Shown in pieces: positions 5,533-62,592 of a stretch of DNA of 64,000 nucleotides. The stretch comes from Podarcis gaigeae. Its lineage: Eukaryota. The notes below the pieces were generated by a model. That model was not told the DNA's origin and ran no database searches. It worked only from the letters and a program-made list of their open reading frames with translations. The stretch is taken from NCBI GenBank assembly GCA_964106915.2, contig OZ066921.1. One strand, given 5' to 3'. Made by a program: the position numbers and the translations under genes. Position 1 is the first letter of the stretch. The number at the start of each line of letters is the position of its first letter.

Positions 5533-5915
5533 ATCAAGTTACAAGAAAGGAGATTCCGACTATACATCAGGAAGAACTTTCTGACAGTAAGAGCTGTTTG
5601 ACAGTGGATCAGATTCCCTCGGGAAGTAGTGGACTGTCCTTTCTTGGAGGTTTTTTTAGCAGAGGTTGAATGGCCTTCTGTCAGATGTGATCTAGCTGAG
5701 ATTCTTACATTGCAAGGGGTTGAACTAGATCAGTGTTTCCCAACCTTGGGTCTCCAGCTGTTTTTGGACTACAGTTCCCATCATCCCTCACCACTGGTCT
5801 TGCCAGCTAGGGATGATGGGAGTTGTAGTCCAAAAACAGCTGGAGACCCAAGGTTGGGAAACACTGAACTAGATGACACTTGGGGTCCCTTCAGACTCTA
5901 CAATTCTCTGATTCT
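5533..5915 (+). mobile_element. CR1 LINE 3' end, interrupted by a hAT MITE
   Basis: Translates to KLQERRFRLYIRKNFLTVRAV (CR1 ORF2 C-terminus); ends in the CR1 tail ...gtcccttcagactctacaattctctgattctg. Confidence 0.9.
5731..5866. mobile_element. hAT-type palindromic MITE (136 bp)
   Basis: Long TIRs cagtgtttcccaaccttgggtctccagctgtttttggactac / gtagtccaaaaacagctggagacccaaggttgggaaacactg; perfect 8-bp TSD aactagat at 5723-5730 and 5867-5874. Confidence 0.95.
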
Positions 5916-6285: not shown

Positions 6286-6470
6286 AGGGATGTAGCTTAG
6301 TAGGAGAGCATCTGCTTGGCATGCAGAGGGCCCCAGGTTCAATTACTAGCATCTCCAAGTGGGAATGGGAATGTCCCCATCTGAAATCCTGGAAAGCTGC
6401 TACCAGTCAGCATAGAAAGTACTCAGCTAGATGGATCAATGATCTGCCTCAATACACGGCAGCTGTCCTC
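6286..6470 (+). mobile_element. tRNA-Ala-like SINE with LINE-type tail; a second partial copy lies at ~6068-6243
   Basis: Head gggatgtagcttagtaggagagcatctgcttggcatgcagagggccccaggttcaat resembles tRNA-Ala with A/B boxes; body and tail are shared with many copies in the window. Confidence 0.75.
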
Positions 6471-8354: not shown

Positions 8355-8397
8355 GCCAAAAAAAAAAAAAAAAGAGGATCTGCATAATCAATTTATT
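8355..8397 (-). terminator. Polyadenylation signal with U-rich downstream element
   Basis: Plus-strand tttatt at 8392-8397 (minus AATAAA), followed ~20 nt later on the minus strand by a T16 tract and tgtgt. Confidence 0.55.
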
Positions 8398-8793
8398 ATT
8401 ATTATTTTTTGGTAAAATTTACATGTGGCAATTTATATGTATAGACCCAAATTTTCCTGTTAAAAATACACCTCTGATGTAAAAGAATTACAATATATCT
8501 CATCATAACAGGGAAGACACCAGGTGATTTGTTGCTGCTGACAAGGTGCTGCTAACCATTGATGGGCAAGTTAGCAGACACCTATGGTTCATATCTTTAA
8601 ACTGGACTTGGAATGAGCAGCGCTCAAATAGAGGGCACTTTGAAATAGAGGGATTTTCTGTGACATCCTTTCCAAATAGACGAAGTATGGTCACCCTAAT
8701 CATGCAGCAAGAGCCTTACCAGTTCTATAAGCAGGGAGTCTTCTCAGATCTAAAAATGAAAATGTGGAAGTTGGACACATGCAATCCTACACC

Positions 8794-8834
<41 letters not shown>

Positions 8835-10509
8835 ATCTCCCCCTAATGATCAGCATAACAATACATGCATTCAGACAATGTTTGAAAGGAGCAAGTGTCT
8901 TAAATCCTAATCCTGACAAACCTGTCAGATCACAGCCAAAACTGTAATGCATTCAGCCTTGTAAATAAATCCACAAAAGTTACTAGCCCACCCTCTCTCC
9001 ACTAAAAGAAAAATACTAGCCAGCTGGGAGCTAGAGGGCAGGGTGCCATCTTCCTTTTTGCATTTCCATGTGAGGCACAGAGGAGGAACAGTGAACTCTG
9101 TTCCTGCTGTACCAAACCAGGTGAAATTCAAGAATTCGCCTGCATGCAGCTTCTTCCTGCCTGTGCTAAGTTTGCACTTTGAAACAAGGCAGAAATAGCA
9201 GGCAGAAATAAGCAACAAAGAATGTGCTCATGAGATACATCCATTAATGAGGAACTTGGCCTGCCACAGGCATTAAACACAATAATCCTAGAGAAATTTT
9301 TGAAATTTACACCCCTTGTCAGCAGTCCTTAAAACATTTGGTAAGTGGATTACAGATATCCATAACTTATCTACTTTTTTCTTCCCATCTAACAAATGTG
9401 ATAAATGTAGAGATATACTTTCAATTTCCCCAAGGCTGCATGCACGCAGAGTGCTGTGATGGCACCGATATCATTCAAAAAATGCTTCAAATAATTAAAA
9501 CATTAATTCAATTAATCTCATAAGTGGCTTAAAATGCATTGCTCTGAGTGCTATTAACAGCCAGTTCATTGGTTTATCGGGACAGGATGGAAGATTAATC
9601 AAAAGCTGTACAGCTATATTTCTGATTAGAGAAAACAATACCGAACCAACTGCCCACTTAATTCTCTCTAGTGCTTTATTAGATGTGCCGATATTTGGTC
9701 CTGATGTGCTATATTCCCTTAATGAACACAATAAAGGAAAAAATAGTCAGTAAAGGGTTCAGCTCAGAGTCTCTATAAAAATCAGAGTGTTCACAAGGTG
9801 TTATACAGAGATTAATTTATAGATTCCTATTAATATACTGCAAGCTCTCTTTTGTATGACTATAAAATCTTATTTCTTGGCTGAGAAAGATAACATTCGC
9901 TATATAAAAGTCCCTAGTCATGACACACATTACTTTACATTTATGCAAAGCAAATGGCTCCTTCAAGAAAGTATTATGCTGAAAGGCTGGGAGAGGAAGG
10001 GGAAGTTTTGCAGGTAAATGGAGGAGCTCCTACCCCCCTCTAAAATTAATTAAAAAGGGTTAAATAGCTATCCTTTTAATGAATAATCCTATCACCTCTC
10101 TGGAGCTAGCAGTAGGATAGATAAACCCTTGGGATTATCTTTTACCTACAGATGCTCTTTGCTAAATTCAGGGAACAGACTATAAGCTCTAAGCAGAGCA
10201 AAGGGCTCACTCCATACTTAAATCTATACGTACTTATTTTATTTTATTTAAAAATGGCAGTCTTGTATTGAGAAAATGAGTATTTCTCCTGATCACAAAC
10301 AGATTCATTCATTGTAGGCAGGCAAACAAATAACTCTTTTTTTTTAAATAATAGATGTTAAAAAGTAACTTGGAACAATAGAAACATACCTACGGAATAG
10401 CTACTCAACGTGTAATGTCTATCACTAACCATTATATATGTCTGCTCCAAGACCTGAGCTACAAAAGGCCAAATTTTCTTAAAAGCATGTTGAAATATTA
10501 ATAGATATC
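8375..10509 (-). other. 3'UTR of the minus-strand gene
   Basis: Largely transposon-free block between the stop at 10510-10512 and a minus-strand AATAAA at 8392-8397 with a downstream U-tract; transposon fragments resume below ~8250. Confidence 0.55.
8797..8833. repeat. (CA)n microsatellite inside the putative 3'UTR
   Basis: Direct reading; (UG)n on the transcribed strand. Confidence 0.95.
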
Positions 10510-10540
10510 TCAAACTGTTGTCCGTCGAGGCCTGCCAGTC
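10510..10540 (-). CDS. Coding part of the terminal exon of an unidentified large gene: (R)TGRPRRTTV*
   Basis: Minus strand reads tctgatgtaatctttcacag|G ACT GGC AGG CCT CGA CGG ACA ACA GTT TGA. Canonical acceptor, retained CpGs, then ~2.1 kb of largely repeat-free AU-rich sequence ending at an AATAAA. Phase-2 entry matches the two upstream 40-nt exons. Confidence 0.7.
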
Positions 10541-17664: not shown

Positions 17665-18103
17665 CACAGAATCATAGAAATGTAGAGTTGGAAGGGACTC
17701 ATTTAATCCAGCCCCCTGCAATGCAGGACTCTCAACAAGATCATACATAACAGATGACTATCCAACCTTAAAAACCTCCAAAGAAGCTTTAAAAAAAAAA
17801 ATCCAAGGAAGGGGAGTCCACAACCTCCTGAAGGAGTCTGTTCCACTGTCAAACAGCTCTTACTGTCAGAAAGTTTTTCCTTATATTTAGTTGGAATCCC
17901 ATTTCTTGTAATTTAAAGCCACTGGTTTCAAGCCTTATCCTCCAGAGCAGGAGAAAACAAGCTTTCTCCATCTTCCATGTGTCAGCCCTTTAGATATTTG
18001 AAGATAGCTATCATATCTCCTCTCAATCTCCCCTTATCCAGGCTAAACATACCCAACTCCCTCAACCGTTCCAGTTCAGTGTCATCTGCAAATTTGATGA
18101 GCA
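17665..18103 (-). mobile_element. Internally deleted CR1 derivative, copy 1
   Basis: Minus strand reads [10 protein letters not shown] joined directly to [13 protein letters not shown], then the CR1 C-terminus and tail. Confidence 0.9.
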
Positions 18104-20059: not shown

Positions 20060-20560
20060 ATGAATACTTCTTAGGTAGCAAAAACTCCGTTACGCACACA
20101 ACAATCTTTTGACTGCAATGCAAATGTTTTGCGTTTCCACCCGCCCCCCTTTCCTGCCACACACCGCTCTCCACGGCAACTGCAGGCATATAATTTATTA
20201 ATAAAGTGCTCCTTTTATAAGGGAGAGTTAATCTAGCCTGCAGAGGCTCTCTGAAGGAAGAGCTCACTCAACCAGAGGCCCTTCTGAGCACAAACACCGC
20301 TTGTATAAAATATCACACAATATTATTTTATACTTCCAGTTTCAAAGGGCCGGGTACTTTCCCCCATTAGACTAACAAATTACAGCAATTGTGGTCAGTA
20401 ATGTGGAGGTTTCTCTGCCGAGCACTTGCCCCTCGGGAGGAAAGAGAGCAGAGGGGTGTTAAAGCAACTGGGCCTTCCACTCAGTGTGCTAAGTCGCTTG
20501 ATAATGCTTAGCTATGAGACGCCAGAGGCAGGCCATAACAGGTTTTGATGTGAATACTTA
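20060..20560. promoter_or_regulatory. Candidate conserved non-coding element / enhancer
   Basis: Repeat-free, CpGs retained, octamer ATGCAAAT (20118-20125), TAAT and TTTAT motifs. No alignment available. Confidence 0.35.
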
Positions 20561-21302: not shown

Positions 21303-24300
21303 TTTTAACTGTATTTCATCCCCCTTTGACTCTTCCCTCTTTAAACCGAAACCAGTATTTTATAAAGTGGGAGCTGAAATAATATATACTGGACAGATAC
21401 TTTACTACAGAAGCACATGACTAAGGATTTGCTAGTCTAGATTCTGGAACTAGTTTCTACTACGATGCTGATTCAGTTCAGCTCAGGCTGGAATAATGAG
21501 AAACCGAGAAAAGCCAAAACGGACAGATCCACCACCTGAGAGCCAGCACCATGGAACTCAATGGGAATTACTTCTGAGAAGATGTATGTGGGCTTACACT
21601 CTTAAATTTAGTTTGAGAAGGAGGAAACTCAAATTCACCCTTGTTTCACCTTTCTCATCTAATTTTAACAGGATGCAGAGTATTTGAAAAAGTTAAGAGT
21701 CAACAACAGCAAGGCACCATGAGATAGCGTGGAAAGCCCCATTTATTCCTCTGTGAGCAGCTGGAAAATAGCAAGCTTGGCTCTAGTTCTGGAGGGACTG
21801 AGGCTGAGTAAGGCTGCCTTTGGTGCACCCCAACACACACACCCCAGGGCCCACTGTTACTTGGGTCCCCCATGGAGGTGCTCCTGAAGCTCCCAGCACC
21901 CCATTGCTTTTGTGAGCAAGCAGATGCTCAGCACAGCTCCAGGTAGCTAAGGCATAAGAAGAGCACTGCTTAATCAGAACATAGGGCTCTCTATAGTAAT
22001 ATTCTGTCCCCACAGTCCCCAGCAGATCACCCAATGGGAAGCCAACAATACCACTCACATTGTCTTAAAAAAACTGATGTTCAGAGTTCTTTTCTGAGCT
22101 TTGAACCTGCTGCCGCTATGCTGCATTTGCTGATCCCCACATTTTAGTATTATAAAACAGAGGTCAATGGAATTATGCATAGTGGGGAGAAAGCAGAGAG
22201 AGAAATAGAAAGATTTTTCTTGCCACCTTACAGAATTAAAACTTGGGGTCCTCCAACTGAATGGTTTGGCACTAGGATTCAGAAAAGACAAATGAAATTA
22301 ACATTTCACCTACACAGATAATTCACTTGTGGAATTCACTGCCACTGGATGTGGTTATGGCCTCTGGCTTAAGATGGCTTTGAAAAGTTTTTTGTACTTC
22401 TGCAAACTGTAGGTTCTCCCCAAGTCTGCTGATACCGCCTTCTTCTCTGTAGATGGTGCTCTTTTGGCCTATGTATGGAAAATAATTTTGCTATAAAAAT
22501 ACAGCTGCCTCCACCATCCTGGTGCCCTCATATTATTTTGGAATGCAACACAGCCATGCTAGTTGGAGATGATGGAGACTGTAGTCCAAAATGTCTGGCA
22601 AATGTTGGAACACAACTTAGCTCAATGAAACCTATACGTTCAGAGCTGCCACACAGTGTCACTGAATACCAGTTAGAAAGAAAGAGATCATAGGCAAATA
22701 TGTACCCTACATTGGGTCAGATCTTTGGTCCATCACTTACAATGACTAGAAGTGGCTCTCCGGGTTTCAGGCACAGTTCTGTCCCAGCCATACCTGGAGG
22801 TGCCAGATATTGGACCTGGGACCTTCTGCATGCAAAGCAGGTGCTTGGCCACTGAGTTGTGTGGGCAACAGTGGGAGAGGGTTCCTGCTTTGATTCCTTC
22901 CTTGTGGGTTTCCTGGAGCCAACAGGTTGGCCACTGTGTGAAGAGGATGCTGAACCAGAAGCAACTGATCCAGCAGGGCTTCCCTTAATGTTCTTATGAA
23001 ATCATTGGGATGTTCACTTGAAATCATCAAAGGCCACCTGAAGCGGCCGTTGCACATTTCCTGATTCTCAATATTATTTAATTTCTCTGCAGCATGCTGG
23101 CTTCACCTCCCATTGGTTCTCCCCCCCTCCTTCCAAATTGCTTTTGGGACTTAGAAAGGGTGCCAGGACTGTCTTAATTATTCCACATTACATTTATAGC
23201 TATGTGTTCTCTCCAGATATTTGAAGTAATTTTTTAAAAAATGAGGTGTCTGAACACTATGGCGAAATGGCCAAGAGTTGAAACATTTTAATGGAGTGGG
23301 AATTTGAATGTCTGCACTTGAAAGCATGGTTTATTTTGACTAGATTGCTTTTCTCCACGGTCATCCCTGACCTCCTGCATTACTCTCAGTGGATTATTAT
23401 TTTTTTCCACCAAGGGAGATTTTTAAGCATGGACCAGAGTAGATAAGTGATATGGTCAAAATCACTACTAGCAAGCCCTAGAATTACTGACCACTTTAAT
23501 AGCTCCTGCTGACCTCCAAATGAAACTTCACCTTTGGTTATTAACATGTCTTTCCACTTTTATGATTTTTTTGGAACATAATTTGTCACAGTTTTTATCT
23601 GCTCAGAGCAAACGCTAGGCTTTTAAAAACTGAGTTATCTTTTTTACAACTGCTAACAATTACACATCACAGAACAGACCGGTTGGAAAAACCAATTATG
23701 AAAAGACCCCGCGTGGAAAGCGTATTCAGTGTTGGGAAGTTTTGAATTATAGATTTTTGAAGTATAGCCATGCAGCAGTGCTGCGCATAGGAAATGGAGA
23801 GGAGAAACCCTGCTTGGAAATGGCTTGTGAGATCTACAAGATAAGATAAGGGATGTTGAAATTAATTGCCCTTGTTTTGTATTAGGGATCACCACTGTTG
23901 TTTTCACAGTGCACTGCTAACCACCGCCATGTATCTCCCACCATAAAGTGATACCTGCTAATTCATAGTGTTGCCATTTTCAGCCACTGAACGTTGGTGT
24001 CAATGAGTCAGAGCTTGGAAACGGTTGTCAAAATGTGCCGTGGCTTTTCCCAAGGCTATTGTGACATCCTCCAGGTGTTCTACTACATCTCCAGACCCAA
24101 TTCAAAGTGATAGTATTAACCTTGGAAGAAGAGATCTCTGGGCTGGGGGTCAAATGTGGCCCTGCAGTCATTTTTGTCTGGCCCCCAGGCCTTTTCCCAA
24201 GCCACACCCCTTCTCTCTGGGCCACACTCTTCACCAGCCCTGCTTCAAATCCTCATTGATGGCTTTCCCCTGGCTGGAGTGCATTCTTGGAATCTAATAA

Positions 24301-24530: not shown

Positions 24531-24955
24531 ATAGAATCATAAGAATTGTAGAGTTGGAAGAGACCCCAGGGTTCATCTAGTCCAACCACTTGCATTGTGA
24601 GAATCTCAACTAGATCACACATGACAGATGGCCATTCAACTGCTGCTTAAAAACCTCCAAGAAAGGACAGTCTACTACCTCCCGAGGGAGCCTGATCCAC
24701 TTTCAAACAGCTCTTACTGTCAGAAAGTTCTTTCTGGTGTTTAGTAGGAAGCTCCGTTCTTGTAACTGGAAGCCATTGGTTTGGGTCCCGCCCTCCAGAG
24801 CAGGACAAACGAGCTTCCTCCATCTTCCGTGTAACAGCCCTTTAGATATTTGAAGATGGCTACCATATCTCCTCCCAGTCTTCTCTTATCCAGGCTAAAC
24901 ATACCCAACTCCCTCAACCATTCCACTTTGGTGTCATCTACAAATTTGATGAGTG
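24531..24955 (-). mobile_element. Internally deleted CR1 derivative, copy 2
   Basis: Minus strand LIKFVDDTKV joined to [29 protein letters not shown] (ORF 24741-24926), then the CR1 tail. Confidence 0.9.
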
Positions 24956-27291
24956 CTGGCTCATACTCTTTGTCAAGCTTGGCAACAGCAGCACTGGCAG
25001 GGGAAACAGGGACATTCTGGGATCAAATCAGAAGCTGGGACAGGTTTCGTAATTCTGGGACTGTCCCTGAAAAACAGAAACTTGGAGGGCATGTTACAGG
25101 GGTGTGCTCAGCAAAAAGCTATGGGGATGTTCTTGCACTAATGTGGGGAGTATGGGTTGGTTTTTTTTTAAAAAAAGTTATAAATAAACCTCTGCAGAAT
25201 GCAGAACCTCTGGCTACCTTAAGTATTGTTAAGTGGCAACCTTTTGTTGAATATTTTAGAGACATTTCTAGTGTTCTTAATCTTTTGATAGGTTTTTGTT
25301 TGGTCCCTAGCCATGGTGGGAAAAGAACTTTTTTGTCTCAGGCCAAAAATCATGAATGGACCATGCCTGTCCCTCTAATCCACCAGTGCCTGCATTACAT
25401 ATGAAGGGATGATGTGCTCCAGGCAGCATTATTCTTCAACTGGAACGTTAAGCAGAGATCCTGCACAATTCTGAACATTAACCATCCCATGATAGCCATG
25501 AAGAAGAGCTACGGGTTTTATTAACCTCTGTGTACTGGACACACTGCACTGGGAAAATAATCATTAACCTCCTCAAGAATTTGTGCAGGGTCTCCATTGC
25601 AAACTGTGCTAAAAAGGAATTGTTCTCAGAAATGCCTTTCATAGTCAAAACACAATTACCTCCTCTCCCCAATATAAACTTTTGCAGAAGAGCTGCAAAA
25701 CCAAAAATGAAGAAGGTAATAAAGACTGTACAGAAATTTAATTCTTATTTTTGGCTAAATATGTATATATTCAGGGATGGGCACACATATATGTAAGAAA
25801 TTTCCCTGCTGTTTTAGAAACTAAGTTGTAACACGTGCGCACATCCACCCACCAACCTTAATAATAATAATTCATTTCAATGTAAAATAGAAGTTGGAAT
25901 GTAGGAAACCACAGTTGCAACTTAACACTCCATACCTAACACCATCCTATATAAACACATACACACCTGAGGAAGGAATAGCATGTACATGCAAAGGTTC
26001 TCCTATCTCCACACAATCAAGATTTTCCCTTCAGGTGAACAATTTCTCTAGGGTTGCTGGCAATACATTTGGCAACAGTGAGAAGGGGATGCATGCACAT
26101 ATAACACCTTGGCAGGTGGGAGAGAGCTCCTGTTGCATGGAGACTTGGTATAACCTTTTGCACCCCTTCTCATGCTTGCCAAATACAGAACTGGCAGGGC
26201 TCTTTTTTTAAAAAAAAATATGTACCTTGTACTCATGATATTTCTATTCTATGTAAAATAAAGATAGCTGCAATTGTAAGACACTTGCAATAAGGATTTT
26301 TTTGAATATCAGTATAGGATAAAGTAGACAAATAAATGTGGAGAGATACAGAGAGAGTGTTGCATGAAATCGGTCCTTCCACTACTTCAGCTGGGATTTA
26401 GCCTTAATTATTCTTTACATTGCAACTGTGGTACATCCTATTAACAACAGTTTGGCTCCTGTTAAGAACTCCCACTAGTCAACTTCAAAGAAAATCATGC
26501 CATGCGTCCCCCGCCCCATCCCCGCTCCCATGCACTCCGTGTGTCAAATGCATTTGTTTTAATCAGCCTTACAACTTCATTATAGTGACTGAACATGGAG
26601 CGACTGGGTGTTGTTGCTTGTATGCCGCAGCGTAACATTAATTTTAACACAGCTTCCATCTAGCCTGGTGACAGAGAATACTTGAGTGATAATTGTTTGC
26701 TTTGGTAAATGTCTTGGTGTCATTCTCACATTAGCTGATGCATTTTTAATCTGTGCCTGTTGCTCCTTTCTTCAATTTGTTCTCCATTCACAGTTATTTG
26801 GAGATCAGCATGAAGCAAGATGAGTGACTAATTTCCTACCAGTACTAGCAGTGGCTGTGTGTTTGTTTGCTAATAGGTTGGGGTCATGGAGAGACCCATG
26901 GCAAAGAGAGAGAACACCATGATGGCCCACTTCAGGGGTAATAATTTTTTTACCACCATGTGAACAAACAATGCTGATTCTCAGGTTCATGTGCTCCTCT
27001 TAAATGCGGGAAGGCAAGAGATAAAAAGCAGCTGCTTTTGGATTTAAACCAGCCATTGTACCCTGTGACATCGACATTCAAGGAACTAGGGTTTGTTTAA
27101 TCTAGCCCTGATTTCATATCTTGTTCTCACAAAGACATGATAGTGGTCTTCAAATATCCAAAGGTCTATCATGCAGTAGATGGAACAGAATTGTTTTCTG
27201 CTGCTTCAAAGGGAAGGACTGCAATTAATGGGTAGAAATTCCAGGAAAGCAGATTTAAGCTAAACATTAAAGAGACTTTCTAATGGCAAGG

Positions 27292-29675: not shown

Positions 29676-30200
29676 TATAAAATTGGAAAGTTGGAAAGTA
29701 CTCTGAGGGTCACCTAGTCCAACCCCCTGCAATGCAGGATCTCAACTAAAAAATTCCTGACAGGTGGCCATCCAATCTCTGCTTAAAAACCTCCAATGAA
29801 TGAGAATCCATCTCCTTCCAAGGCAGCCCATTCCACTTTCAAACAGCTCTTACCATCAGAAAGTTGTTCCTGATTTAGTCAGAATCTCCTTTCTTGTAAC
29901 TTGAAGCCATTTGTTCAGGTCCTACCCTCTATAGCAGGAAAAAACAAGTTTGCTCCATGTGACAGCCCATTAGAAATTTGAAGGTGGCTATCATATCTCC
30001 TCTCAGTCTCTGCTTTTTCAAGCTAAACATACCCAGTCACCTCAACTGTTCCTCACAAGGCTTACTTTCCAGACAATTTATCATCCTGGTTGCCTTTGCT
30101 CTGCACATGCTCCAGCTTGTCAATATCTTTCTCAAACTGTGGTGCCAGGACTCCAGGCCGGGTCTGACCAAGGCAGAATACAGAAGTACTTTTCCTTCCT
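29676..30200 (-). mobile_element. CR1 LINE 3' fragment without the internal deletion
   Basis: Same 3' sequence as 17665 and 24531, but continues normally past cctcaactgttcc into tcacaaggcttactttccagac. Confidence 0.9.
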
Positions 30201-33201: not shown

Positions 33202-33241
33202 CTGGCAGGCTTCTGAGACAGCCTAGCATGCAGCGATGATT
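33202..33241 (-). CDS. 40-nt cassette exon B, alternative C-terminus xIIAAC* (stop at 33223-33225)
   Basis: ccttcattcag|AATCATCGCTGCATGCTAGGCTGTCTCAGAAGCCTGCCAG|gtacat. AG/GT flanked, same length as and 32/40 identical to 35415-35454; similarity stops at the splice sites. Confidence 0.75.
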
Positions 33242-34435
33242 CTGAATGAAGGCACTTGGGGGGAAATCAATAAGATTGATCATTCAGATGCTCGGCTTAT
33301 AGGTGTGGATCAGAGTTCTTGGAAAGCTAGAATGTAGGTGTTTTTTGTTTGTTTTAAAAAGGATGTTGGCAGGAAACCTTGATGGGTGTGACATTCACCC
33401 AAAGGAGGTGTGGTGGAGATGGTGGGGATGGATACAGAGGAGTCCTTCATCAAGAAAACAAGATGAATATACTGTGAAAATGCAACTATCCCCACAACCG
33501 AAAACATGCCCAAAACATAAGAGGTGGCCCATCTAGCCCAGCATTCTGTTCTCACAATGGCCAAACAGATGCCCATAGGAAACCCACAAACAGAACCGGA
33601 CAGCATCTGCAACTGGAGTGAGTGGTGTAGAACATAGCCTTCATAGCTAGGAACCATTGGTAGCTCTATCTTTTATTGTCACAAAGACAGATAGCAGCTG
33701 GATGCAGAATATTTCCAGTTTAGCCATGTATAAGAAATCAGAAGTAGGCTATGGGCTTCTTACTCCTGCCTACAAACCTCTCCTATGCAAATTCTGCCTC
33801 ATAATGTGTTTCAACCTTGCTGAAGTGTTATATCTGCACTGGTTAACATTAACTAACCAGAATCAATGTTAACCAGAATTGCCCTTGAAACAAGTTTGCA
33901 ATGCCTAGTTAAGAGGAAATCAAGGTACGTGTGTAACACTACACTATGGCGGAATCCAGCTATAGATGCGGGGAATTAATAAAAGGGGGAGGAGGAGAAC
34001 ATTGCACAGTCCCAATCTCCTAGTCTGGTTATATGAGGAATGTTCTATCTGAACATCAGTAACTTATCCACGATCATTTTCTTGAACTAAATTAAATTTG
34101 GTTTTACTGATATACAGTATATTATACATATGGCATAGCCAAGCACAATTACTTCAGATTGATAATAGGTGAAATATGTTCGCATTTATTCATTTCACAC
34201 TCACCATGTTTTGGTAGCAGGGAGTCCTTATGTCATTTCTTTATGACAGAAACACCTACCACAATCACACAGCTTTAAAGCCATGTCACTTTTTTGGGAG
34301 CCTGATTTGAATTAAAAAGTCATATTTCTAGCCATCTATTTTACCCCATATATGCCATTCAACTGCTTTGATCTGCAGTATTGGTGCTGTTACAGGTGCC
34401 ACATAATATCCATTCTGCATTTGTAAGAATGCAAC

Positions 34436-34740
34436 ATTTTAGTGTGACAGGACCTATACTTTGGAACTCCCTGCCCATGGATATCAGGTGGAAACGTTCA
34501 CTGTACCTCTTTGGCACCTGCTAATAACATTTTTGTTTAGGCAAGCCTACCAAGATATTTAGAATGTTGGTGCATGTAATCTGTTTTTAGCTTTGTTGTT
34601 GATTTTTTTAAAAAAAATTAATGTTTTAAATTATTGTTGTTGGTTGTGGAAAAACCTTAAAACAGTTTATAAAAAAAAGATAAAACAATTAAAATTAATA
34701 GAAACAGTCAAGCAGTTTATAAATTCAAATAAATAAATAA
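34436..34740 (+). mobile_element. L2-type LINE 3' end
   Basis: ctttggaactccctgccc...tttttgtttaggcaagcctac followed by a T-rich UTR and (aaat)n tail; homologous to 41620-42365. Confidence 0.65.
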
Positions 34741-35414
34741 CATAAGGAAAAGGGAATGTCACCTACTTTGAAACTAAAATGGATGACTCTCTCAAATTTC
34801 AGTTTGTCTTAGTTTCTCACCCCCCCCCCATCTCAAATTCAGTTCACCACAATTATTATTTCTGCCTCATTTGGAGAGTTGTTGTTTTTTAAATGAAAAT
34901 GCATCAACTTTTTAGTGGGCATTTCTCTTAACAGAAATATTTTCGTATGTCGTTTTTTCCAATATGAACACTTCTGCAAACACATTATCCTGATTCAATA
35001 TGTTTTCAATAATATGTGCATTTTTTTTCTCTGCACTTTCCCCTAAAAGAGGCAGTCTTGAACACATTTTTGGATTGGAGAAGTCAGTCACAAAATTCAG
35101 AGAAGTACACATTTCAAAAAACAACCTCATCTCAGTTTATGTATTGTTTTGAGAAATGCAAATTAGATCAGTTTGCATTAACATCTGAACCATAGTGTAG
35201 CTTCTTCCTCCATCCCTACATGCCAAACCATTTGACCCACATCCACAAAGGTGTTCTTTTTTCTTAAGGTGTAAAAAAAGATATAATGGCTAAGCAAAGG
35301 GGGCAAATAAATGGAAAGAATTCAACAATTTCAAAGGAATGGAATTAGCAGAAACAAGTCCTGGATGTTGCCGCTATGAATATGTTAAAACACCTATTAT
35401 TAGTTAAACCTCAC

Positions 35415-35454
35415 CCGGCAGGTTTCTGAGACAGCCTAGCACGTTGTGATCATG
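35415..35454 (-). CDS. 40-nt cassette exon A, alternative C-terminus xMITTC* (stop at 35436-35438)
   Basis: ttgactaataacatgcacag|CATGATCACAACGTGCTAGGCTGTCTCAGAAACCTGCCGG|gtgagg. Good donor, branch-point-like CTAAT, and TGC-TAG at the same exon position as in exon B. Confidence 0.75.
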
Positions 35455-37747
35455 CTGTGCATGTTATTAGTCAAACCACTTTGCCTGCTAAGTAACCTCA
35501 TATTTCTATAATGTTATCAGCGGAATGTCACCAGCAAAAGCAGTGCCAAGCCAAACCTCAACAGAAAACCAGCCAGAACCTGAACCACCGATTTTAAAAT
35601 AACTATTGGATCAGAGCTGCATATTGTGAAGGACCATGATAGTCCTTCTATGAAGAGAATGAACAGAATTGATTTGAAAGGGACAGTTTTGCAGCAGCAG
35701 CTTCTGTGTAGTTTATTTAGTCAATATAGAAATAGTGATTTTACATATTGCTCCTTCTAATAGCAAGCTCAGATGTCGAGTTTGGATGGGACTGGAGCCA
35801 AAATGAGGCCACTTTAGCAGTGAAAAAAGAAGAGGGAGGCATGTGTGTTTTCAGGGAATCCCTAGTTTTGCAGTTTGTGCATGTATATATATATATATGG
35901 TCTAAAATGGGGAAGCCCTCCTTCTAAAAACAGCAAAAACAAGGACCAAATATGCTCAGTAGCCACAGAAGGTTGAGTATCAGTTGTAAAAGAAAAACAG
36001 AAAAAAGGAGGGGGGATAAAGAGGAGTGGAATATCCTGCTTGGAAGGAATGGAAGGCTGAAACCCAGAAGCACTCCTGTTGGGAGTGAGGAAGGATAGAG
36101 CACATTTTGTTGCTGCATCCTACTTATATTGAACACATTATATACATGATGATTTGCTGACTATTTCTTCAATCTTACCCATGTCTGCATCGATTCTTGT
36201 TATATGAGCGCAATGGGGCTTACTCCCAGGCACATGTGCATAGAATTGCACTTAGATTTTTATTAGTTTCTGCATATTACCACAGATGCAGCAATAGTGT
36301 GTACAGATCACACCTGAATAGGCTCACATGGCAAATACTGTTCGGTTGCTTAGACTGTGACTGCTCATTGTCCCTGTGCTGCAGCTTATTATATAGCTTC
36401 CAGCTAGCTTGCTCCCCATGTCCAGACTCCTTAGAGTAAATACAGGAACAGGGTGTCAGATGCGTATCCTGAAGCCAAAAGAGAGGGGTTTCCTATTTCT
36501 TTGTTAGCCAAGGGAGACGAGAGGCATGCTACCCGAAGATAATAACAGGGGAAGAAATCAATTCTCTTATGTTGTTACACATCCTTGCGTGCAAGTAAAC
36601 TTGACAAGAATGAGAGTGCATTTCTACTGTGCTAAGGTCATTTGAAATCATTAGCACAGGCTGATATTATCGGCGGGGGGGACGGGACTAAATAAGGTGT
36701 ACTCACTCTGGGAGGTTCTTTCTAACTGCAAGCAGGCAGAGAGGTACAAGAAGACCTGAAAATTCTGTGCTCTGAAATTAGATCACAGACACATACGCAT
36801 GCGCACACACATACAAAAGCTCCAGGAATAAACTGTGCCGACTCTGTCGCAAAGAATCCAAACTCACAGGGACAGCCTACACACATTCAGCAGGATTACC
36901 CTCCACAGACATGCCCCCAAAGCAGGAGCAGCATAGTTGCATGGCCAGCAGTGGATGCAGGAACAGGGCTAGCATGCACAGAGCTCCCTCTCTCTCTCTC
37001 CACGCTCTGTTCATTACACAAAGGAAGGAATGGCCAAATAAGGTGGGTGGAGAAAGACTTTTCCGCAGCTGTGACCTGGTTTTGGAACTCCTTCCCAAAA
37101 GAAGTTCAGCTTTGATGCCACATAAACTGCTATTCCCCACACTATAAAACATTCTTTTTTAAAGGAAGGTCTTTGGGCAGGTGTCTTAACTTTCCTGGAA
37201 CTTGTTCTAACTTTTTTTTTTAGCTGAGTACCTTCATGATGGTTATTTAACCTTAATTATTGTTTTTAAAATGGCACTGTTATCTTTAATGGGCATTAGT
37301 CATTTGAGGTATTTTGGGGAGGGGGGAGGACAGGATGAAAAAGTTATCAAAAGGAAATAAAATACTGGGTGGTATTCAACTATGTTTCACTCAGAATCGA
37401 CCTGCTGAAATTAATGGAATAACTTAGCCATGTTCATTCATTTCAAGGGATCTACTCCTGAGTAAAATTTGTGGAATACCACCCATTGCTTTGTGTTCTA
37501 TATTTTAAGTGTGTGTGTGTGTGTGTTCCCACTCGCACACCCCTTATAGAGAGACAGACATATGCAAAGAGATGGAGCGGGGAAGTGCGAGAGAGACAGA
37601 GGGACCTTTGGGGACCTTTGGACCATAACTTGGTATAGAGATATTAAGATAAAAGACAAAAAAAGCCCAAGGTCAGCCCAGCACATTTTGCTACTTGAGG
37701 CAGAGCAGGACATGCTTCCTGAAACACACACCAAGTCAAGGTATATA

Positions 37748-37827
37748 CAGGGTGAGTCCTTTAAAAGAGGCCCCATGGATAGAGAGTACACATGTTCCAC
37801 AGGGCCTCTTTTAAAAGAATCACCCTG
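37748..37827. mobile_element. 80-bp mariner-type mini-MITE
   Basis: TA|cagggtgagtcctttaaaagaggccc...gggcctcttttaaaagaatcaccctg|TA. Confidence 0.85.
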
Positions 37828-37999
37828 TAGTACCAAAGGCTGGCCAAGTTTTACTGACACTGGAGACAGAGAATCCCACAAACTTCTCTCTCTCACACAC
37901 ACACCCCTGTAGGAAAAGTTCAATGCTAACAGTAACTACACAACTAACCATTTGCTGCCCATTCATGACACTCAAAACTACCTGCCTAGTACGGCCAAC

Positions 38000-38720
38000 T
38001 CATTCTGCTAAATGGTAGGGATGGCCCAGAGAAAAAAATACCATCCACGTATTTGCTGTACCCCACAGCGTGCAAGAGGACGCTAATATAAGTGAACTTT
38101 CAAAAGCAGCAGCAGGACTGCAAATGAGACATCTGAAAAACACTCTCTGTAATTCATAAAAGAACCGAGAGTAAAACAACTGCACGCCGCTTTTTACGCC
38201 GCTCTCCTTAGTCTCCTCCGCTGCAATGCAAATGGGTTTCAAACACATCCCAGGCTGCTTCCCCAGCAAGATTAATATGCAGGCTGCATCTCTGAAGTGG
38301 ACATAATGTCAAACAGATACATCACAAAGGAAATGTGTATTATTATATAATGAGTCAACACAAATATCATTATCGCTGCTCCAGGTACCTGCTGGCAATG
38401 ACAAGCCTGTGATACGGCTGCTGGCCTGAATACAACCTAGCTGTGTAATTGATCGAGCACTCCCTCTCCCTCTCTTTCTCCATCGCCACTGTTCCTTGGC
38501 TCTCTTGCTGAATCCACAGGGGTTCTTCATTCTCCATCCTTTCACAGGAGGCATCGCCTCTGAAGACAGACTTCCTTGCTTGACGCAACAAGATTAAGCA
38601 ATTTGCTTTTAATTAGTACTGCAGTCGTTTCCCAAGCTTAAATGGCAGCTGAACCTAGAAAGCAGACTGTCTCTTAAAAGTTTAAAGTTGATTCCCTGTA
38701 TGCAGAGAATTTTGCAGCCT
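38000..38720. promoter_or_regulatory. Candidate conserved non-coding element / enhancer
   Basis: Repeat-free with many CpGs, octamer ATGCAAAT (38226-38233), AP-1 site TGAGTCA (38351-38357), TAATT motifs. Confidence 0.35.
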
Positions 38721-39189: not shown

Positions 39190-39257
39190 GCAAGGGCAGG
39201 TCCAGCTAATGCAACCCATTTGCACTAATGGATTGCATTAGCTGGACCTGCCCTTGC
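39190..39257. repeat. Near-perfect inverted repeat (31-bp arms, 6-nt loop)
   Basis: gcaagggcaggtccagctaatgcaacccatt-tgcact-aatggattgcattagctggacctgcccttgc; one mismatch. Confidence 0.95.
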
Positions 39258-41571
39258 TGAGTAAATTCAAATACTAGGAAAGGGGAGAGAAAGTTTTACT
39301 GAAATTCTAATGGATGGGGGCAAGTTCTTGCTATGCCTACCTTACTTTTGAGGTGGCCATGGGGTTTTGTGAATGCCACTCCTCTCTGGGAATAGAGATA
39401 GCATGCCTCTGAAGGCCAGTTTCTGGGAAACTTGAGTAGGAGGCTTCTACGGCTTTTATATCTTGCTTGAGGTCTGAATCTGATTGGCTACCATTGGAAA
39501 TAGGATACTAGACTACACCCAGTAGGGCTCTTCTGATGTTCATCATAATCATATCCTGTATCTCTTATGATCAGGCAGTGAGCACCATTGCATACGCAGT
39601 CAAAATGGCACCCCTCAAACAAAAGAGAAGAGGGATCAATAGGCTTAGGATGACACCAAAGTTTGCAGAAGTTAAAAATCTGTTGGGGGGATGGAAGGAC
39701 AGCCTAGTGAGCAGCACAAGTCTGGGGAAGGGAATGGCAGGAAAGAAGGGATGGGATAGAATACCTGGACTCCTGAGCAGGCCGCTCCCACCCTGGTACA
39801 TTTTGAAGCAGGTCCCACTTGAATCTTTAAAAATGAAGCCTCAGAGGCAGTGTGCTACTTCATACCTGTTACTGGGTGAGAGGCCACCCTGGCAGCAGCC
39901 CTTGGTGAATTTATTATTACGGTTTAATTTATTTAGAATCCAATTTCTTGCCAAAGTGGCTTCTAAGCAGTTTACAAGTGCTAAACCAATTATAAACATA
40001 TATCCAATATCTAATTACAAAGTACGCAATGCAACGATTTCATCAAAATGTTAAAACTATCTATAATGAAAGCATGGCATAAAAAGAAGCCAATTGAACA
40101 GCATAAGCAGCAACTGAAATTATTAGAGCAGGAGGTTCAAGTCAGGAGATAAGGGGAAAGCTGGTCTAAACAGGTGTCTTTTCAAGAGCCAGCAGAATAT
40201 TGATACTGGCTTACTGGGTGGACATAGGTGGGCAGAGGCGCTGAAAAGTTCAACAGTTCAAGCTGCCCAATATTCCTTTCAAAGCCACCTTCCTGGTGGC
40301 ACTGAGAAGAGAAATGCCAGGCAGTGCCATTGCAGCCTCTGGGCTTTGCCCTCTGCTTTATGCATTGCTTCCTGATGCTTTGTGGGGGAAATCAAAATGG
40401 CAGCTACCAGTAGCAGCCCAGCACTTCTTGACCCTGAACCTTAAATAATATAAAATAAAATAAAATTAGGAGGTACTAGTGTTGGCTGTGGTGGACCCTC
40501 TACAACAGATCCAGTTCAGCACGAGAGTGGGACTAAGTCTTTCTTGTTCCATTTCCATACTGATTCTGAGGCGGAATCAAAAAAAGAAAGAAAGACGTAC
40601 TTCTAAGGAAGGCTGAGGTGTGCTACTCTGATAACAGATTTTTCTTTTCTTGCCTTTTAAAAAGCTCCCTAATGGGTAATTCAGCTGCCCACAGCCTGCA
40701 GTCACTCTCAAAGGGAATTTTGTCCATGTGGGCAGTCATGCTTCCTCCTGTACAATTCCATCTGAGAAAGAGTCTAGGCTGCCAGTGGCCGAATGACCTG
40801 TTGGAGAGCTTTTTAGAAGACAAGGGGGGAAAACTGCCAGCAGAAAGAGGCAGCGGTGCAGTTCTTGGACTCCTTTGTAAAGGACTGCAGATTCTTACAC
40901 AGAAAACTGGCCTGCCAATAAGCACAACTCTCCCACCCAGCCACAACAAGCACCCAGACAAAAGTACAGAATAAAAAGTACAGAATAAATTCACTCATAA
41001 TGAAAGAGAATTTCAAGCAGCTAATATCTGAATTACAATCCCTGCAACACGTGAATCAAAGAAATTACTGCTATATTTGCCACAGTTCTAGAAGCCTCCT
41101 TATTTTCACTTGCCCAAATAATTCCTGTTTTCTGGCCAGTATTCATGGATTTCGAAAAGAAAAGTGGTTGAGAAACAGATTGTGCACATTTTTATACATG
41201 GTCTAACTATTATAGAAGCAACACACCCCTTTACCTGAACTTCTCATTCTTTGTGCTTTTAGTCTCCAAGAACTTTTTTTTAAACGAGGTTCTGCATAAT
41301 ACACGTTTTACATGTTAATAATTCACTTCAGAGTTGTTACATCCTTGCTGTACATGGAAGTGCAAAATCATGCTATGTGCAACCTGTGGAGTACACCCAG
41401 TTTCCCTCAAGCCACACTTTATATACTTGCGCTTGACTGTTCATGCAGTCAGGATAATGGGAATTATATGGAAATTGTGCTGCTCAAGCTGTTAGGAAGC
41501 TTTGATTGACAGGCGTCTGGACTTTGGGGGAGTACTATATAGCTCATCAATAAAGAATAAGTAAGTAGAGT

Positions 41572-42365: not shown

Positions 42366-43339
42366 GGTTTAATTTACATGATTTATACCATTTTGTATAC
42401 ATTTTTTGGCTGGAGAACTGCATTGCAAAATTCAAAGTAGTGTGAATTTCAAAGGATAGCTGTGTTTCCGTCCAATTTTTGTTTCAGGAAGTGTGAATTT
42501 CCAGAACAAATCTCTCCCCCGTCTCAGAATGCTTCCATGTGCACCACAATACTGGCAGAGGGGAAAAAATATCTAATCCACCACTGGAGTTGCCTCCAAG
42601 GCTGGTGTATCGTATTTTTCTATCTTCAGTTGCACGGCTTGTTTGAGATATGAGCTACTGCTGCGTTTACATTTGTGCCACTGCTTCAATAATCGAACGA
42701 GGCGCACAGTCCATCATGCATTAACAAGAAGCTTTGATTTGCCAGTGCCTCTTTAGCAACACTCTCACTCTTTCCTCATCCAACCCAAGAGGAATAAGCT
42801 TCAATTTCTTCCAGAAATTGGATGTTATCAAAAGGCCAGGTGCTGTGTGGAAAAACTCTATGGCATCAAAGGCAAAGCTTTCTTCCTATAGGACCTTCAG
42901 AAAACCAAGGGCTACTTTCTAAGTTGTGATTTTGTGGCATGTGGTTGCTCTTGCAAGTTGTTTCCCATGTCAAACCATATTTCAAAAACTGTATGGGCTA
43001 AAGATATGTGGATGCATGTGTGATTGCTGACAGGAGTGAGACCTTGTCATTATATTATACCCCTTCTCAGAGATCTGCACTGGCTGTTGTTACTGAGCCA
43101 AATTCAAGGTGCTACTATTAGTATATAAAGCCCTTAATAGCCTGCTGATTTAAAGGCTTCCTTTATTCCACATGTGGACACTCAACCTCTTTAATATGTG
43201 GACCTGCCACTTTTACAAGTGGTAAAATGTTCCCCATTTGCAAGGAATCAATCTCTAAGCATGGCAGCTCCTATTCTCTGGAACTTCCTGCCAGTTAATA
43301 TTTGGCAGATGTCTTCACTACACTGTTTTCAATCCTGTA

Positions 43340-43686
43340 AAGGTAAAGGGACCCCTGACCATTAGGTCCAATCGCAGACGACTCTGGGGTTGCAGCGCTT
43401 ATCTCGCTTTACTGGCTGGGGGAGCCGGCATACAGCTTCCGGGTCATGTGGCCAGCATGACTAAGCCACTTCTGGCAAATCAGAAAAGTGCACGGAAACG
43501 CCATTTACCTTCCCGCTGGAGCGGTACCTATTTATCTGCTTGCACTTTATGCTTTTGAACTGCTAGGTTGGCAGGAGCAGGGACCAAGCAACAGGAGCTC
43601 ACGCCGTGGTGGGGATTCGAACTGCTGACCTTCTGATGGGCAAGCCCTAAGCTCTGTGGTTTAACCCACAGTGCCACCCACATCCC
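43340..43686 (-). mobile_element. Sauria SINE, full length
   Basis: tRNA-like head gggatgtgggtggcactgtgggttaaaccacagag, core agtcatgctggccacatgacccggaag, (acctt)n tail; short TSD cctgta. Confidence 0.95.
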
Positions 43687-45917: not shown

Positions 45918-46271
45918 AAAGGTAAAGGTACCCCTGACCATAAGGTCCAGTCGCAGACAACTCTGGGGTTGTGTGCTCATCTCACTCTATAGGTTGAGGG
46001 AGACGGCGTTTGTCCGCAGACAGCTTCTGGGTCATGTGGCCAGCATGACTAAGCCGCTTCTGGCAAACCAGAGCAGTGCATGGAAACACCATTTACCTTC
46101 CTGCTGAAGCGGTACCTATTTATCTACTTGCACTTGATGTGCTTTCAAACTGCTAAGTGGGCAGGAGTTGGGACTGAACAATGGGAGCTCACCCCATCGA
46201 GGGGATTCGAACCGCCGACCTTCTGATTGGCAAGCCCTGGGCTCTGTGGTTTAGACCACAGCACCACCCGC
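45918..46271 (-). mobile_element. Sauria SINE, near full length
   Basis: Same head, core and tail as 43340. Confidence 0.95.
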
Positions 46272-49200
46272 TGTGGTATAAAATAAAGTCGTAGATGAAA
46301 CACAGGATTATAAACATAAAGGAAGAAAATTTGCAAGATACGTGTAGTTTATGTATCACTTTTTTGAAAAAGAAATAAGTACCTGAAAAAGCATGGTGTG
46401 TCTAAACAAAATTCAAACAACCAGGCAATGTTAAATCATATTTGCTGTTACCCTATGAACTAGATTTGCAAATGCTTAGAAGGAATTATCAGTGGTTCCA
46501 GCCTCTGTGTATACTTTTCACATTTTTCTCTCAAACAGTTCTCTTTCCTTCTTAATCTTCTCCTTTGTCACATCTGTATCTCACAGCTGCTTTACCAGGG
46601 TCAGTCTCTATTTTCTAGTGCCCATCTATCCTTATTTTGCTTTTGTGGGGAGAAGCATGCCCAGTGGAACTTACTCCAAACTAACCATGTATTTGATTAG
46701 AGCTATGGTCATTTCCCCTGAACTGCACAGGTTCCTATTTTACCAAAATATGCAATCTTGTGCACACTTAGGGAAGGGCAGACATTTGCTTAAGTCAGTG
46801 GTGGGGAACCTTTTCCACACAGACCTAATTAAACCTGCCGTGTCTTCTTATTTAGCCTGCAAAGTGCTTTTAAAAAACAAAAACAAAATATGTCCACCCA
46901 TCCATAACTTGATGTCATAGGATGTCATGTGCTAGACAGGTGACGCACTGAATTCCAAAGGAAGAATGCATTCCTGATTCTCCCTTTCCATGCGCTGCTT
47001 CGCTTTTTAAATTTGGCACCATTCCCCATCACCATACACTTAAGAGTGTGCTACCAGTTCTTCCTTTGAAGCCTCAGCTGTCGCTTGAATTCAAGGGAAG
47101 AATCTTTGCCACCTTTTTGAATCCAAGCCATGGAAGGAAGACTCTCCCTTTGAAGCAATAGTTTTAAGTTTAAACATCAGATTTTTGGCATTCAATAAAT
47201 TTTGCAGCTTGTTTTTGTGTGTGTATCTCAACAAAATTTAATACTCTGCCTTAGATCAGAGCTACAAGTTTAGGCAAATAAGAGACATAATTTGGTAGAA
47301 GAGATGTAATTTGGCAAAATACACTTTGCCATATTAAAGATTTTATAATGTGCATAAATATTAATAAAAATACACCAGTTCTGATGAAACAATATAAGAC
47401 AAGAATGAACATGTCCTCTCAGATAAGCTGAAACAAAACACTCACTCTTTCTCCCTTGTTTTGGTTCCTAATTTTGATTTCATGTGTGGAATGCTTTTGG
47501 GATTTATTTTTTTAAAATAATGGCTAGAGGCCTCAAAGGCTGGAAGTGACCTGGGCCTCTGCAGAGCTCTGAGAGGGCCTGTTCCTAATGAAGTCATTAG
47601 AAGCATGGCCAGGCCTGAGTCACAGTGGCTCAGTGGAATCCAAATATCTTACAATGGCCATCAGTGGCATCCAACTGGCATTCTGCCACTGACAAAAATA
47701 ATTTGTCAACAGACTGCGGAATGAGGCAATGTTCAAATATTTCCACTGCAGTCCTTCACCCCAGAAATCTGCCCTAGGGTGTTGGGGGCCCTCTGAAGCC
47801 GATTTTAAGGTATAGGGAGCTGCAGGGAGGAAACTGCCAAATATTGCCTCACCCTCCAGTCTCCTGATGTATTCCTTGTGTTAGCAATGAAGGAACACCA
47901 ATTGGAGACCACTGTGAAGAGTTTCCTAGGTGTTTGCATCCCATAAAGAAGAAAAAGAATGTAATACCTGGCCTAGAAATGAGGACTGGGTATAAGAACA
48001 ATTGACTTGCTGAAGTCTACTTTCTCATTCAGCCGTCATCTACATAGTACCCATTATACTGGGCAGGAGTAAGAGATAATGACATATATGGAGTGGGTGG
48101 GGGAAGGTTAGTAGGACCTCATTCTAGGGATGTATAAGGAAATAATCAACCCTATTGGAGAGGGAGGGGAAGCAGGCATTGAGGGGATAAAAGGGATTTT
48201 AAAGCAAAGATGTAAAGTGTTGATTAGGAAGGCAAATATGACAGGGGAAGGGGGGAGCAGAGAGAAAACTAAATTGCCCATGGGATGAATAAAACAATAA
48301 CAGATTTGTTATAAGTACGAAAAGGAGGGGAGATTAACAGGGAGAGCCTCTTGCACCACTGGAAGGAACATGCAAGGGAGTTAATAACACAAACAGAATC
48401 TCTGGAGGAAGAAATGGAATAATTTATTCTTGAAAGATCAGCAAGGCAAACCATAGGTGAAAAAGATAGAGATGGTCCTTCTTGCAGCAGAACCCAGAAT
48501 AAACTAAAAAGGAAGTGTGTCTGCAAACCACAAAATGACACAGCAGGGTGAACTGTTGTTACATCACCTTCTACACAATCGTCTCAAGGCAGCATGCAAT
48601 AAAAACAGTAAAACCAAGTTAAATCACAAAAGTAGACATATCTAAAACAAAATTAAAACAATAGAAATATAAAATAGATCATGGCAGAGATCTCTTCATT
48701 TGTCTTAAAAAGCTTGTTGGTACAGAAATGTCTCCAATGTCCCCATGGGCCCCTGTGCTAATCCACAGAACAGGAGCACCTTCACTGAAAGCATTGTCTG
48801 GCGTTATTACAGAAGAATCTCTTCTGCAGACTGCAGGGATCTACCGGGTATATAAGGTATATTTGGGGCATGTAGGATCTACCGTGTTTTTTACTAAAAA
48901 ACCCTGAAATCCACCAATCAGAGCGAGGTGTGAAATAGTGGCTTGGGTTAAGACTATACTAAGTATTAAGGACCAGGATGACTCCTTGCAAGTGTTCATT
49001 CCAGTAATTTGTGAAGCAAAAGTTGTTTTAAACTGTTCTTAATATTTTAAATGGCTGTGATACAGCTTGGGTCCTTATAGTGAAGAGTGGGTAATAAGTG
49101 GAATTAACAGCAACACTGGAGCAAGCTCACAATTCCTTTTGCATAAAAATCCCTTCCTGGTTTTCCCTAAAGCTTTTCATTTCAGCAAACTATTTTATTT

Positions 49201-51660: not shown

Positions 51661-52036
51661 GGGAGCAGATGGCACTGTGGTCTAAACCACTGAGCCTCTT
51701 GGGCTTGCTGATCAGAAGGTCAGTGGTTCGAATCCACGCAACGGGGCAAGCTCATGTTGCTCTGTTCCAGCTTCTGCCAACCTAGTAGTTTGAAAGCACA
51801 CCAGTGTAAGTAGATAAATAGGTACCACTGCGGTGGGAAGGTAAACACCATTTTTGTGCGCTCTGGCTTCTGTCACAGAGTTCCATTGCACCAGAAGTGG
51901 TTTAGTCATGCTGGCCACATTACCCGGAAAGCTGCCTGTGGACAAATGCCAGCTCCCTTGGCCTGAAAACAAAATGAGAGCCGCACCCCACAGTTACGTT
52001 CGAATGGACTTAACTGTCCAGGGTCATTTACCTTAC
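51661..52036 (+). mobile_element. Sauria SINE, full length
   Basis: Head gggagcagatggcactgtggtctaaaccactgag, B box ggttcgaatcc, tail tttaccttac; TSD catcctaaa on both sides. Confidence 0.95.
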
Positions 52037-52160
52037 CATCCTAAACCATGCCCAAGATGCTATATGGATAAAATATACCTTTATGAATATGTACAGGTCT
52101 ATTTTCAAAAGAGCAGCAGTGATTTAGAATAGAGTTTAATTTATTTATTGCCTTTTCAGA

Positions 52161-53150: not shown

Positions 53151-53363
53151 CAGTGGCGTAGCGTGGGTTGTCAGCACCCGGGGCAAGGCAAGTAATTTGC
53201 GCCCCCTAACCCGTGGATTTGCACCCCCTAACCCGTGGATTTGCACCCCCTAACCCGTGGATTTGCACCCCCTAACCCGTGGATTTGCGCCCCCTAACCC
53301 TAACCCCCAGATGTTGCGCCCAGTGCGGCCGGCCCCCCCTGCACCCCCCACGCTACGCCACTG
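53151..53363. mobile_element. Young hAT MITE with an internal 22-bp minisatellite
   Basis: TIRs cagtggcgtagcgtggg / cccacgctacgccactg; 8-bp TSD tagggatg / cagggatg; CpG-rich; internal (cccctaacccgtggatttgcrc)n. Confidence 0.9.
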
Positions 53364-56178: not shown

Positions 56179-56390
56179 GTAAAGGTAACGACTCTGGGGT
56201 TGCGGCACTCATCTCGCTTTACTGGCCAAGGGAGCCAGCGTACAGCTTCCGGGTCATGTGGCCAGCATGACTAAGCCGCTTCTGGCGAACCAGAGCAGCG
56301 CATGGAAAGGCCGTTTACCTTCCCGCCGGAGTGGTACCTATTAATCTACTTGCACTCTGACGTGCTTTCAAACTGCTAGGTTTGCAGGAG
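56179..56390 (-). mobile_element. Sauria SINE, 5'-truncated
   Basis: Core and tail present, tRNA head absent; 11-bp TSD ctggaaattta (56166-56176 and 56391-56401). Confidence 0.95.
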
Positions 56391-58112: not shown

Positions 58113-58359
58113 CTCCTGCCCACCTAGCAGTTCGAAAGCACGTCAAAGTGCAAGTAGATAAATAGGTACCGCTCTGGTGGGAAGGTAAACGGTGTTTCTG
58201 TGTGCTGCTCTGGTTCGCCAGAAGCGGCTTGGTCATGCTGGCCACATGACCCGGAAGCTGTACGCCGGCTCCCTCGGCCAATAAAGCGAGATGAGCGCCA
58301 CAACCTCAGAGTCGGTCATGACTATACCTAATGGTCAGGGGTCGCTTTACCTTTACCTT
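58113..58359 (+). mobile_element. Sauria SINE, 5'-truncated
   Basis: Core and (acctt)n tail, no head; 12-bp TSD ttaccctagtat (58101-58112 and 58360-58371). Confidence 0.95.
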
Positions 58360-62206: not shown

Positions 62207-62592
62207 TAAAAGGTAAAGGTAAAGGACCCCTGGATGGTTAAGTCCAGTCAAAGGCAACTATGGGGTTGCGGTGCACATCTCGCTTTCAGGCTGAGGGAGC
62301 CAGTGTTTGTCGACAGACAGCTTTCCGGGTCATGTGGCCAGCATGACTAAACCGCTTCCGGCACAACGGAACACCATGATGGAAGCCAGAGCGCACAGAA
62401 ACACCGTATACTTTCCTGCCACAGTGGTGCCTATTTATCTACTTGCACTGGCATGCTTCTGAAATGCTAGGTTGGGAGGAGCTGAGACAGAGCAACGGGA
62501 GCTCACCGTATCATGGGGATTCGAACCGCCAACCTTCTGATCAGCAAGCCCAAGAGGCTCAGTGGTTTAGACCACAGTGCCACCCACATCCC
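62207..62592 (-). mobile_element. Sauria SINE, full length, nested in an older CR1-type tail (~62050-62670)
   Basis: Head, core and tail present; the host sequence ctgctgtgagaatagg resumes as agaatagggtgctggactagatgg...gttcttatg. Confidence 0.9.

Follow-up and report, generated by a model that had tools for sequence, protein, structure and literature searches.

We examined two 40-nt segments, A and B, on the minus strand of a 64,000-nucleotide stretch of Podarcis gaigeae DNA (contig OZ066921.1, assembly GCA_964106915.2; hereafter the window) that, judging from the sequence, very probably represent duplicated alternative exons; the upstream exons of the Podarcis gene concerned would lie beyond the window. 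A G/U-rich intronic element upstream of A, termed D, is predicted to pair with both exons. The best overall explanation, to which we assign slightly less than an even chance, is that A and B are tandem-duplicated phase-2 exons arbitrated by D and included one at a time or not at all, so that the protein would end in one of three tails.

Two probable homologous 40-nt exons

The geometry given in a preliminary description of this DNA, made from the letters alone, was confirmed: A and B are 40-nt minus-strand segments located 2.2 kb apart, each with CAG before it and GT after it (Table 1). Direct comparison gave the claimed identity of 32/40, and TGC-TAG is indeed found at exon nt 14-19 in both. 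The flanks are unrelated, again as claimed, with identities of 3-8/20 that are at background level and include the shared splice dinucleotides. An identity of at least 32/40 has a probability of 1.4e-12 per pair, or ~0.006 over all pairs in the window, and elsewhere in the window, both strands included, neither 40-mer is matched at more than 25/40. The other placeable AG..GT look-alike pairs in the window are SINE, CR1-like or microsatellite repeats. A repeat finder returned an ungapped A/B repeat of 45 nt which starts exactly at CAG and ends at GT, and the chance of its ends coinciding with these two signals is about 0.004. The restriction of the homology to the interval between the splice sites, together with the presence of two copies, supports the suggested origin of A and B as homologous exons made by duplication. 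Identity is uneven along the exons (7/13 in nt 1-13 and 25/27 from nt 14 on; Fisher p = 0.008), being highest at and after the stop, a point absent from the earlier reading. A repeat family was ruled out as the source, there being two copies only, and so was a plus-strand reading, as splice signals and pairing occur on the minus strand only. A snoRNA or miRNA reading was also rejected; the Rfam matches were confined to tRNA-like SINE heads and one MITE hairpin.

Table 1. Features of the window discussed in the text
Feature	Positions	Strand	Remarks
Exon A (candidate)	35415..35454	minus	40 nt; TAG at 35438-35436
Exon B (candidate)	33202..33241	minus	40 nt; stop TAG, 33225-33223; contains an RBFOX-type TGCATG (33232)
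Branch-point consensus, also a QKI-type ACTAAY motif	35464..35473	minus	branch A 13 nt before exon A
Second QKI-type ACTAAY motif	35399..35404	minus	directly after donor of A
Element D (core)	35543..35576	minus	intronic, G/U-rich; complementary to nt 13-40 of A and B
Putative last exon T, start	10510..10540	minus	9 codons in phase 2 up to RRTTV, followed by a stop
Open frame 0 of T	10358..10540	minus	60 codons; would be entered on skipping in phase 0 or when the A/B stop is read through
Putative 3' UTR	8390..10509	minus	AATAAA at 10248 and 8397; inferred extent

Splice sites were ranked using rough matrices made for this analysis (3495 GT and 4414 acceptor sites). Both donors are strong, ranking 33 and 138, and the acceptor of B is fair (rank 473). 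The acceptor of A is weak (rank 1585) but has a consensus branch point at -13; its lack of a pyrimidine tract counts against the best explanation. QKI-type ACTAAY motifs occur on both sides of A, alone among 251 AG-40-GT segments. A and B are homologous, equal in length and phase, situated in one intron cluster and each provided with its own splice sites, and we are confident that both are exons.

An intronic element predicted to pair with both exons

In a scan of 28-41 kb, D, which lies 89-122 nt upstream of A, was the best duplex partner for A and B alike. For the predicted core duplex between exon nt 13-40 and 35543-35576, the free energies are -34.6 (A) and -35.7 kcal/mol (B); the value for B does not constitute an independent test, since the core is common to the two exons. 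The duplex can be extended to 35525, covering the 5' parts of the exons, and then reaches -36.5 (A) and -40.2 (B) with 33 and 35 pairs, including 6-7 G-U pairs. When the strongest site within 300 nt on either side was used, 0/150 shuffles (mean -22.6, sd 2.4) matched or beat the A core (-34.4 kcal/mol), and the whole of A beat 148/150. When 250 AG-40-GT segments were compared against their own flanks, A took rank 1 on raw energy and rank 3 after GC correction; B, with no partner in its own flanks, took rank 141. Locally, the probability of pairing is 0.95-1.0 at nt 13-22 and roughly 0.8-1.0 at nt 33-40, except for the unpaired nt 35. The pairing on the opposite strand reaches only -23.

Both differences between A and B in the core (nt 32 and 39) place A or G opposite U, and both versions pair. 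In the predictions D resembles a docking site, engaging the two exons in the same register. The sequences that it would select are exonic (nt 13-40) and not intronic, the flanks of A and B being unrelated. The fold of the whole region is no better than shuffles (z -1.03), five other 40-mers of the window pair with D as well as A or better, and D is located within a hydrophobic 42-codon frame that follows the strong acceptor at 35647. Based on these predictions we marginally favour a functional role for the pairing.

The acceptor at 35647 (minus strand; rank 26 of 4414) is 193 nt upstream of A and would yield a 233-nt exon containing both D and A. The phase-1 frame of this exon ends in a 22-residue hydrophobic stretch and its phase-2 frame has 11 codons; no homologue was found.

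Reading frame and protein endings

The acceptor at 10540, proposed as the start of the terminal exon (T), exists and ranks 118 of 4414. The three phase-2 tails were reproduced as described: A ends the protein in xMITTC, B in xIIAAC and skipping of both in xTGRPRRTTV, each followed by a stop. The assertion that entry must be in phase 2 was not borne out, because phases 0 and 1 also yield coherent products. Phase 2 is the best single choice but is only modestly favoured (P about 0.05), and we consider the odds that it is correct to be even. It is favoured because of three features. Within nt 1-13, A and B differ at six sites, which occupy phase-2 codon positions 3, 3, 1, 3, 1 and 3 (P = 0.049); in the other phases most of them fall on positions 1-2. 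GC content in T steps from 0.58 to 0.19 immediately past the phase-2 stop (nt 29-31), with UTR-like AT-richness after nt 31. Lastly, a class I PDZ-type motif (S/T-x-V) is present at the C-terminus of the phase-2 frame of T.

Nonsense-mediated decay (NMD) follows a rule of 50-55 nt between the stop and the last junction. In phase 2, the distance from the stop to the last junction is 21 nt when a single exon is included and 61 nt when A and B both are, so only the double form would be degraded, provided that T is last. The poly(A) signals in the 3' region (Table 1) fit a terminal T. However, a strong donor (10389) and an inner acceptor (10453) are found within T on the minus strand, and T may instead be an internal exon of 151 nt ending at that donor. 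The share of words of 8400-10540 found in one RNA assembly is 0.06; the 151-nt exon alone would give 0.057, and partial coverage could explain the value equally well. DNA runs under three species labels contain 80-97% of the words of the same interval. Frame 0 of T runs for 60 codons without a stop (dinucleotide shuffling, P = 0.013), a feature for which the best explanation has no account. Further downstream on the minus strand, well-scoring candidate exons were noted at 8749-8720 (30 nt) and 3894-3814 (81 nt).

Among the alternatives to phase 2, entry in phase 0 ranks first, and we regard it as unlikely. A and B would both be open (core LGCLR.LP) and would act as frame-shifting cassettes choosing among the three frames of T, with tails of 60 aa upon skipping, 33 aa with one exon and 36 aa ending RRTTV with both. 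The two exons would not need to exclude each other, there being no bar to double inclusion in this phase; if T were internal they would be poison exons. Both exons are stop-free in phase 0, with 13 homologous coding residues compared with 5 in phase 2, and their conserved core comprises 7 identical residues and one synonymous change. Phase 0 also accounts for the long frame 0 of T, reaches the T stop at nt 29-31 when A and B are joined, and is consistent with the strength of donor 10389 and the word share of the 151-nt exon, a share also obtainable from partial coverage. Against this, 7/8 A/B changes are on codon positions 1-2, T is AT-rich and UTR-like past nt 31, and the pieces searched gave no protein or family match.

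Entry in phase 1 appears slightly less probable again. B would be the usual penultimate exon, giving a 22-aa basic tail ending RRTTV, and A a duplicate whose first full codon is a stop, truncating the tail 35 nt ahead of the junction and so safe from NMD; the A+B form (75 nt) would be an NMD target. As B is open and alone reaches the same stop in T, the GC step and the PDZ-type end fit as well as in phase 2, and the core holds eight identical residues. In this phase, however, 4/6 of the early changes fall on codon position 2 and the common TAG would be incidental.

That A and B are not coding exons at all, being non-coding or UTR exons, a small local duplication or a decayed hairpin arm, we consider improbable: 28 kb of upstream sequence without a coding exon, the weak acceptor of A and the lack of database support fit such a reading, but it leaves aside a homology bounded exactly by both splice sites, the restriction to two copies, the strong donors, the QKI-type motifs flanking A and a pairing confined to the minus strand.

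A proposed docking mechanism

Returning to phase 2, we propose that A and B are alternative exons produced by a single tandem duplication close to the 3' end of a large gene on the minus strand. The output would be a switch between the basic class I PDZ-type tail RRTTV, which may bind PDZ domains, and two 5-residue Cys-ended tails (MITTC and IIAAC). In either exon D would pair with nt 13-40, reaching the 5' splice site, but it would mask only one exon at a time. Being nearby, A would be caught first and would be off by default; D would move to B if QKI bound around A or if folding were slower. QKI around A and the RBFOX-type motif in B could set the choice between tissues. NMD would remove transcripts with both exons and spare those with one. 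Skipping of both exons needs another cause, because a single docking site masks one exon.

The ancestral arrangement was most likely a stem formed by D and one exon, in which exon duplication amounted to duplication of one arm. We propose that the post-stop, non-coding part of the exons is the most conserved because pairing with D must be kept, and this would account for the likeness of non-coding exon sequence between the paralogues.

Possible recoding of the common stop

The predicted duplex between exon and intron surrounds the A of the UAG, which has a 5' U and a 3' G as neighbours, as expected of an ADAR site. Intronic complementary sequences are typical of conserved editing sites (PMC4053846). 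In addition to the best explanation, and not as a replacement for it, D might be an editing-complementary sequence (ECS) common to both exons, an option that we consider rather improbable. Editing of the UAG A (35437 in A, 33224 in B) would give tryptophan, and the 13-codon exon would then read into frame 0 of T, adding a 68-aa extension. D would both arbitrate splicing and present each UAG to ADAR, for a repertoire of one PDZ tail, two tails of 5 residues and two edited tails of 68 residues, to which we likewise give only a small chance.

The stop falls where the stem is most stable (pair probability 0.99), UAG matches the neighbour preference of ADAR (PMC4053846), the frame reached is the one open for 60 codons (P = 0.013), and stop-to-Trp editing in humans is recorded for PEX14 and IQSEC3 (PMC8897444). 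However, editing is at a low level in the human cases known. The target A faces U35548 between two G-U pairs, with no A-C mismatch, the 5' side in A has only 5 continuous pairs, and the post-stop differences between A and B are non-synonymous in the frame concerned. Leaky read-through without editing was rejected on account of the UAG-G context, which is not known to be leaky.

Stop-to-Trp editing also underlies the amber/W site of HDV. It occurs in fungi as well, at PUK1 and DBF2 (PMC4817773, PMC13123824). As in ADAR sites with an intronic ECS (PMC4053846), the duplex here is an imperfect one between exon and intron, with about 26-35 pairs and the UAG inside; it differs from ADAR recoding sites in that the A is opposite U, and any editing here is hypothetical. 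No case of one ECS serving two duplicated exons was found in the literature searched. If the stop were edited, ADAR stop recoding would be tied to exon choice in a vertebrate, where an equivalent of the amber/W switch would be combined with mutually exclusive splicing.

Comparison with known systems

We consider that A and B very probably form a pair of duplicated alternative exons of a type already known in general; the predicted common intronic partner sets them apart. GRIK3 has a 40-nt cassette. Literature hits for the B40 and M43 exons of RBFOX show that such 40-nt exons exist, and the RBFOX and GRIK3 exons resemble A and B in being 40-nt exons that change the C-terminal frame. We take their sequences to be different from A and B, and the RBFOX pair presumably has no internal stop.

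C-terminal substitutions derived from tandem exon duplication make up 77/236 human events (PMC8373072, PMC9741552). A and B are like these events in being homologous exons of equal length that would swap a C-terminal tail. In contrast to the catalogued events, A and B are internal cassettes, each having a stop and a donor of its own, and not alternative poly(A) last exons, and skipping of both yields a third tail. The catalogue requires at least 8 homologous residues (PMC8373072), compared with 5 here in phase 2 and 13 in phase 0. Duplicated exons that alter few terminal residues fall below such cut-offs for homologous exons and could nevertheless toggle PDZ-type binding.

In ATE1, R1 and R4 compete for R3 at exons 7a and 7b (PMC7797038), and duplication of one arm has been proposed as a route to competing RNA structures (PMC6071210). 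The docking and selector sites of ATE1 and Dscam share with our locus one site complementary to two homologous sites of duplicated exons, and A, B and D fit the duplication of one arm of an ancestral stem, as in the one-arm model (PMC6071210). Here, unlike in ATE1 and Dscam, the exon itself, mainly in its post-stop part, makes up the duplicated arm, and the common site is upstream of both exons. The ATE1 elements are also intronic and proven by compensatory mutation, whereas the pairing of D is predicted only. A docking site with the post-stop sequence of the exons as its selectors would allow the one-arm duplication model to be tested cleanly.

Gene identity and other features of the window

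No convincing coding exon was found upstream of A in 35.7-64 kb of the window. We therefore place the upstream exon outside the window. Searched separately, the exon pieces gave nothing usable in the PDB, protein homologue searches, exact look-ups, the ESM Atlas or, as peptides, in papers; Pfam gave only hits below the cut-off, and a search of representative proteins only three low-complexity repeat proteins. In metagenome scans, the exon core pattern had no match and the T pattern had one (L001 6528-6560), on a GC-rich, bacterial-looking contig, which we attribute to chance. NKAIN1, CBFB, NFATC3, GRIK3, CAMTA1 and SLC6A2, which we considered as candidates based on synteny, do not appear to fit. 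The gene may already carry an annotation of these isoforms.

On the minus strand, the acceptor at 30449 is the second strongest of the window and has GT immediately after it (AG-GT, recursive-splice-like); from its sequence, a further alternative last exon is possible at this site. The strong acceptor at 40565 (minus strand; rank 33) precedes an exon that opens with the same five bases as B and has a 32-codon phase-2 frame, for which no real homologue was found.

Near-perfect or long inverted repeats, probably MITE-like, are present at 39190-39257, 37746-37829, 40640-40833 and 5751-5846, the last with below-threshold miRNA matches in Rfam. By eye and by mutual similarity we recognised Sauria-SINE-like copies and CR1-like fragments at about 43330-43680, 45920-46280, 51680-52040, 56190-56380, 58120-58360 and 62230-62600, and at about 17700-18100, 24600-25000 and 29700-30200; the window's repeats resemble Sauria SINEs. 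tRNA-like SINE heads occur at 6286, 11732 and 60700. Repeat-free, motif-rich stretches at about 20150-20500, 23640-23900, 26500-26700 and 38000-38600 resemble conserved enhancers by eye only. A short tandem array with a G-rich unit of roughly 20 nt is located in a small GC-rich insertion at about 53210-53310.
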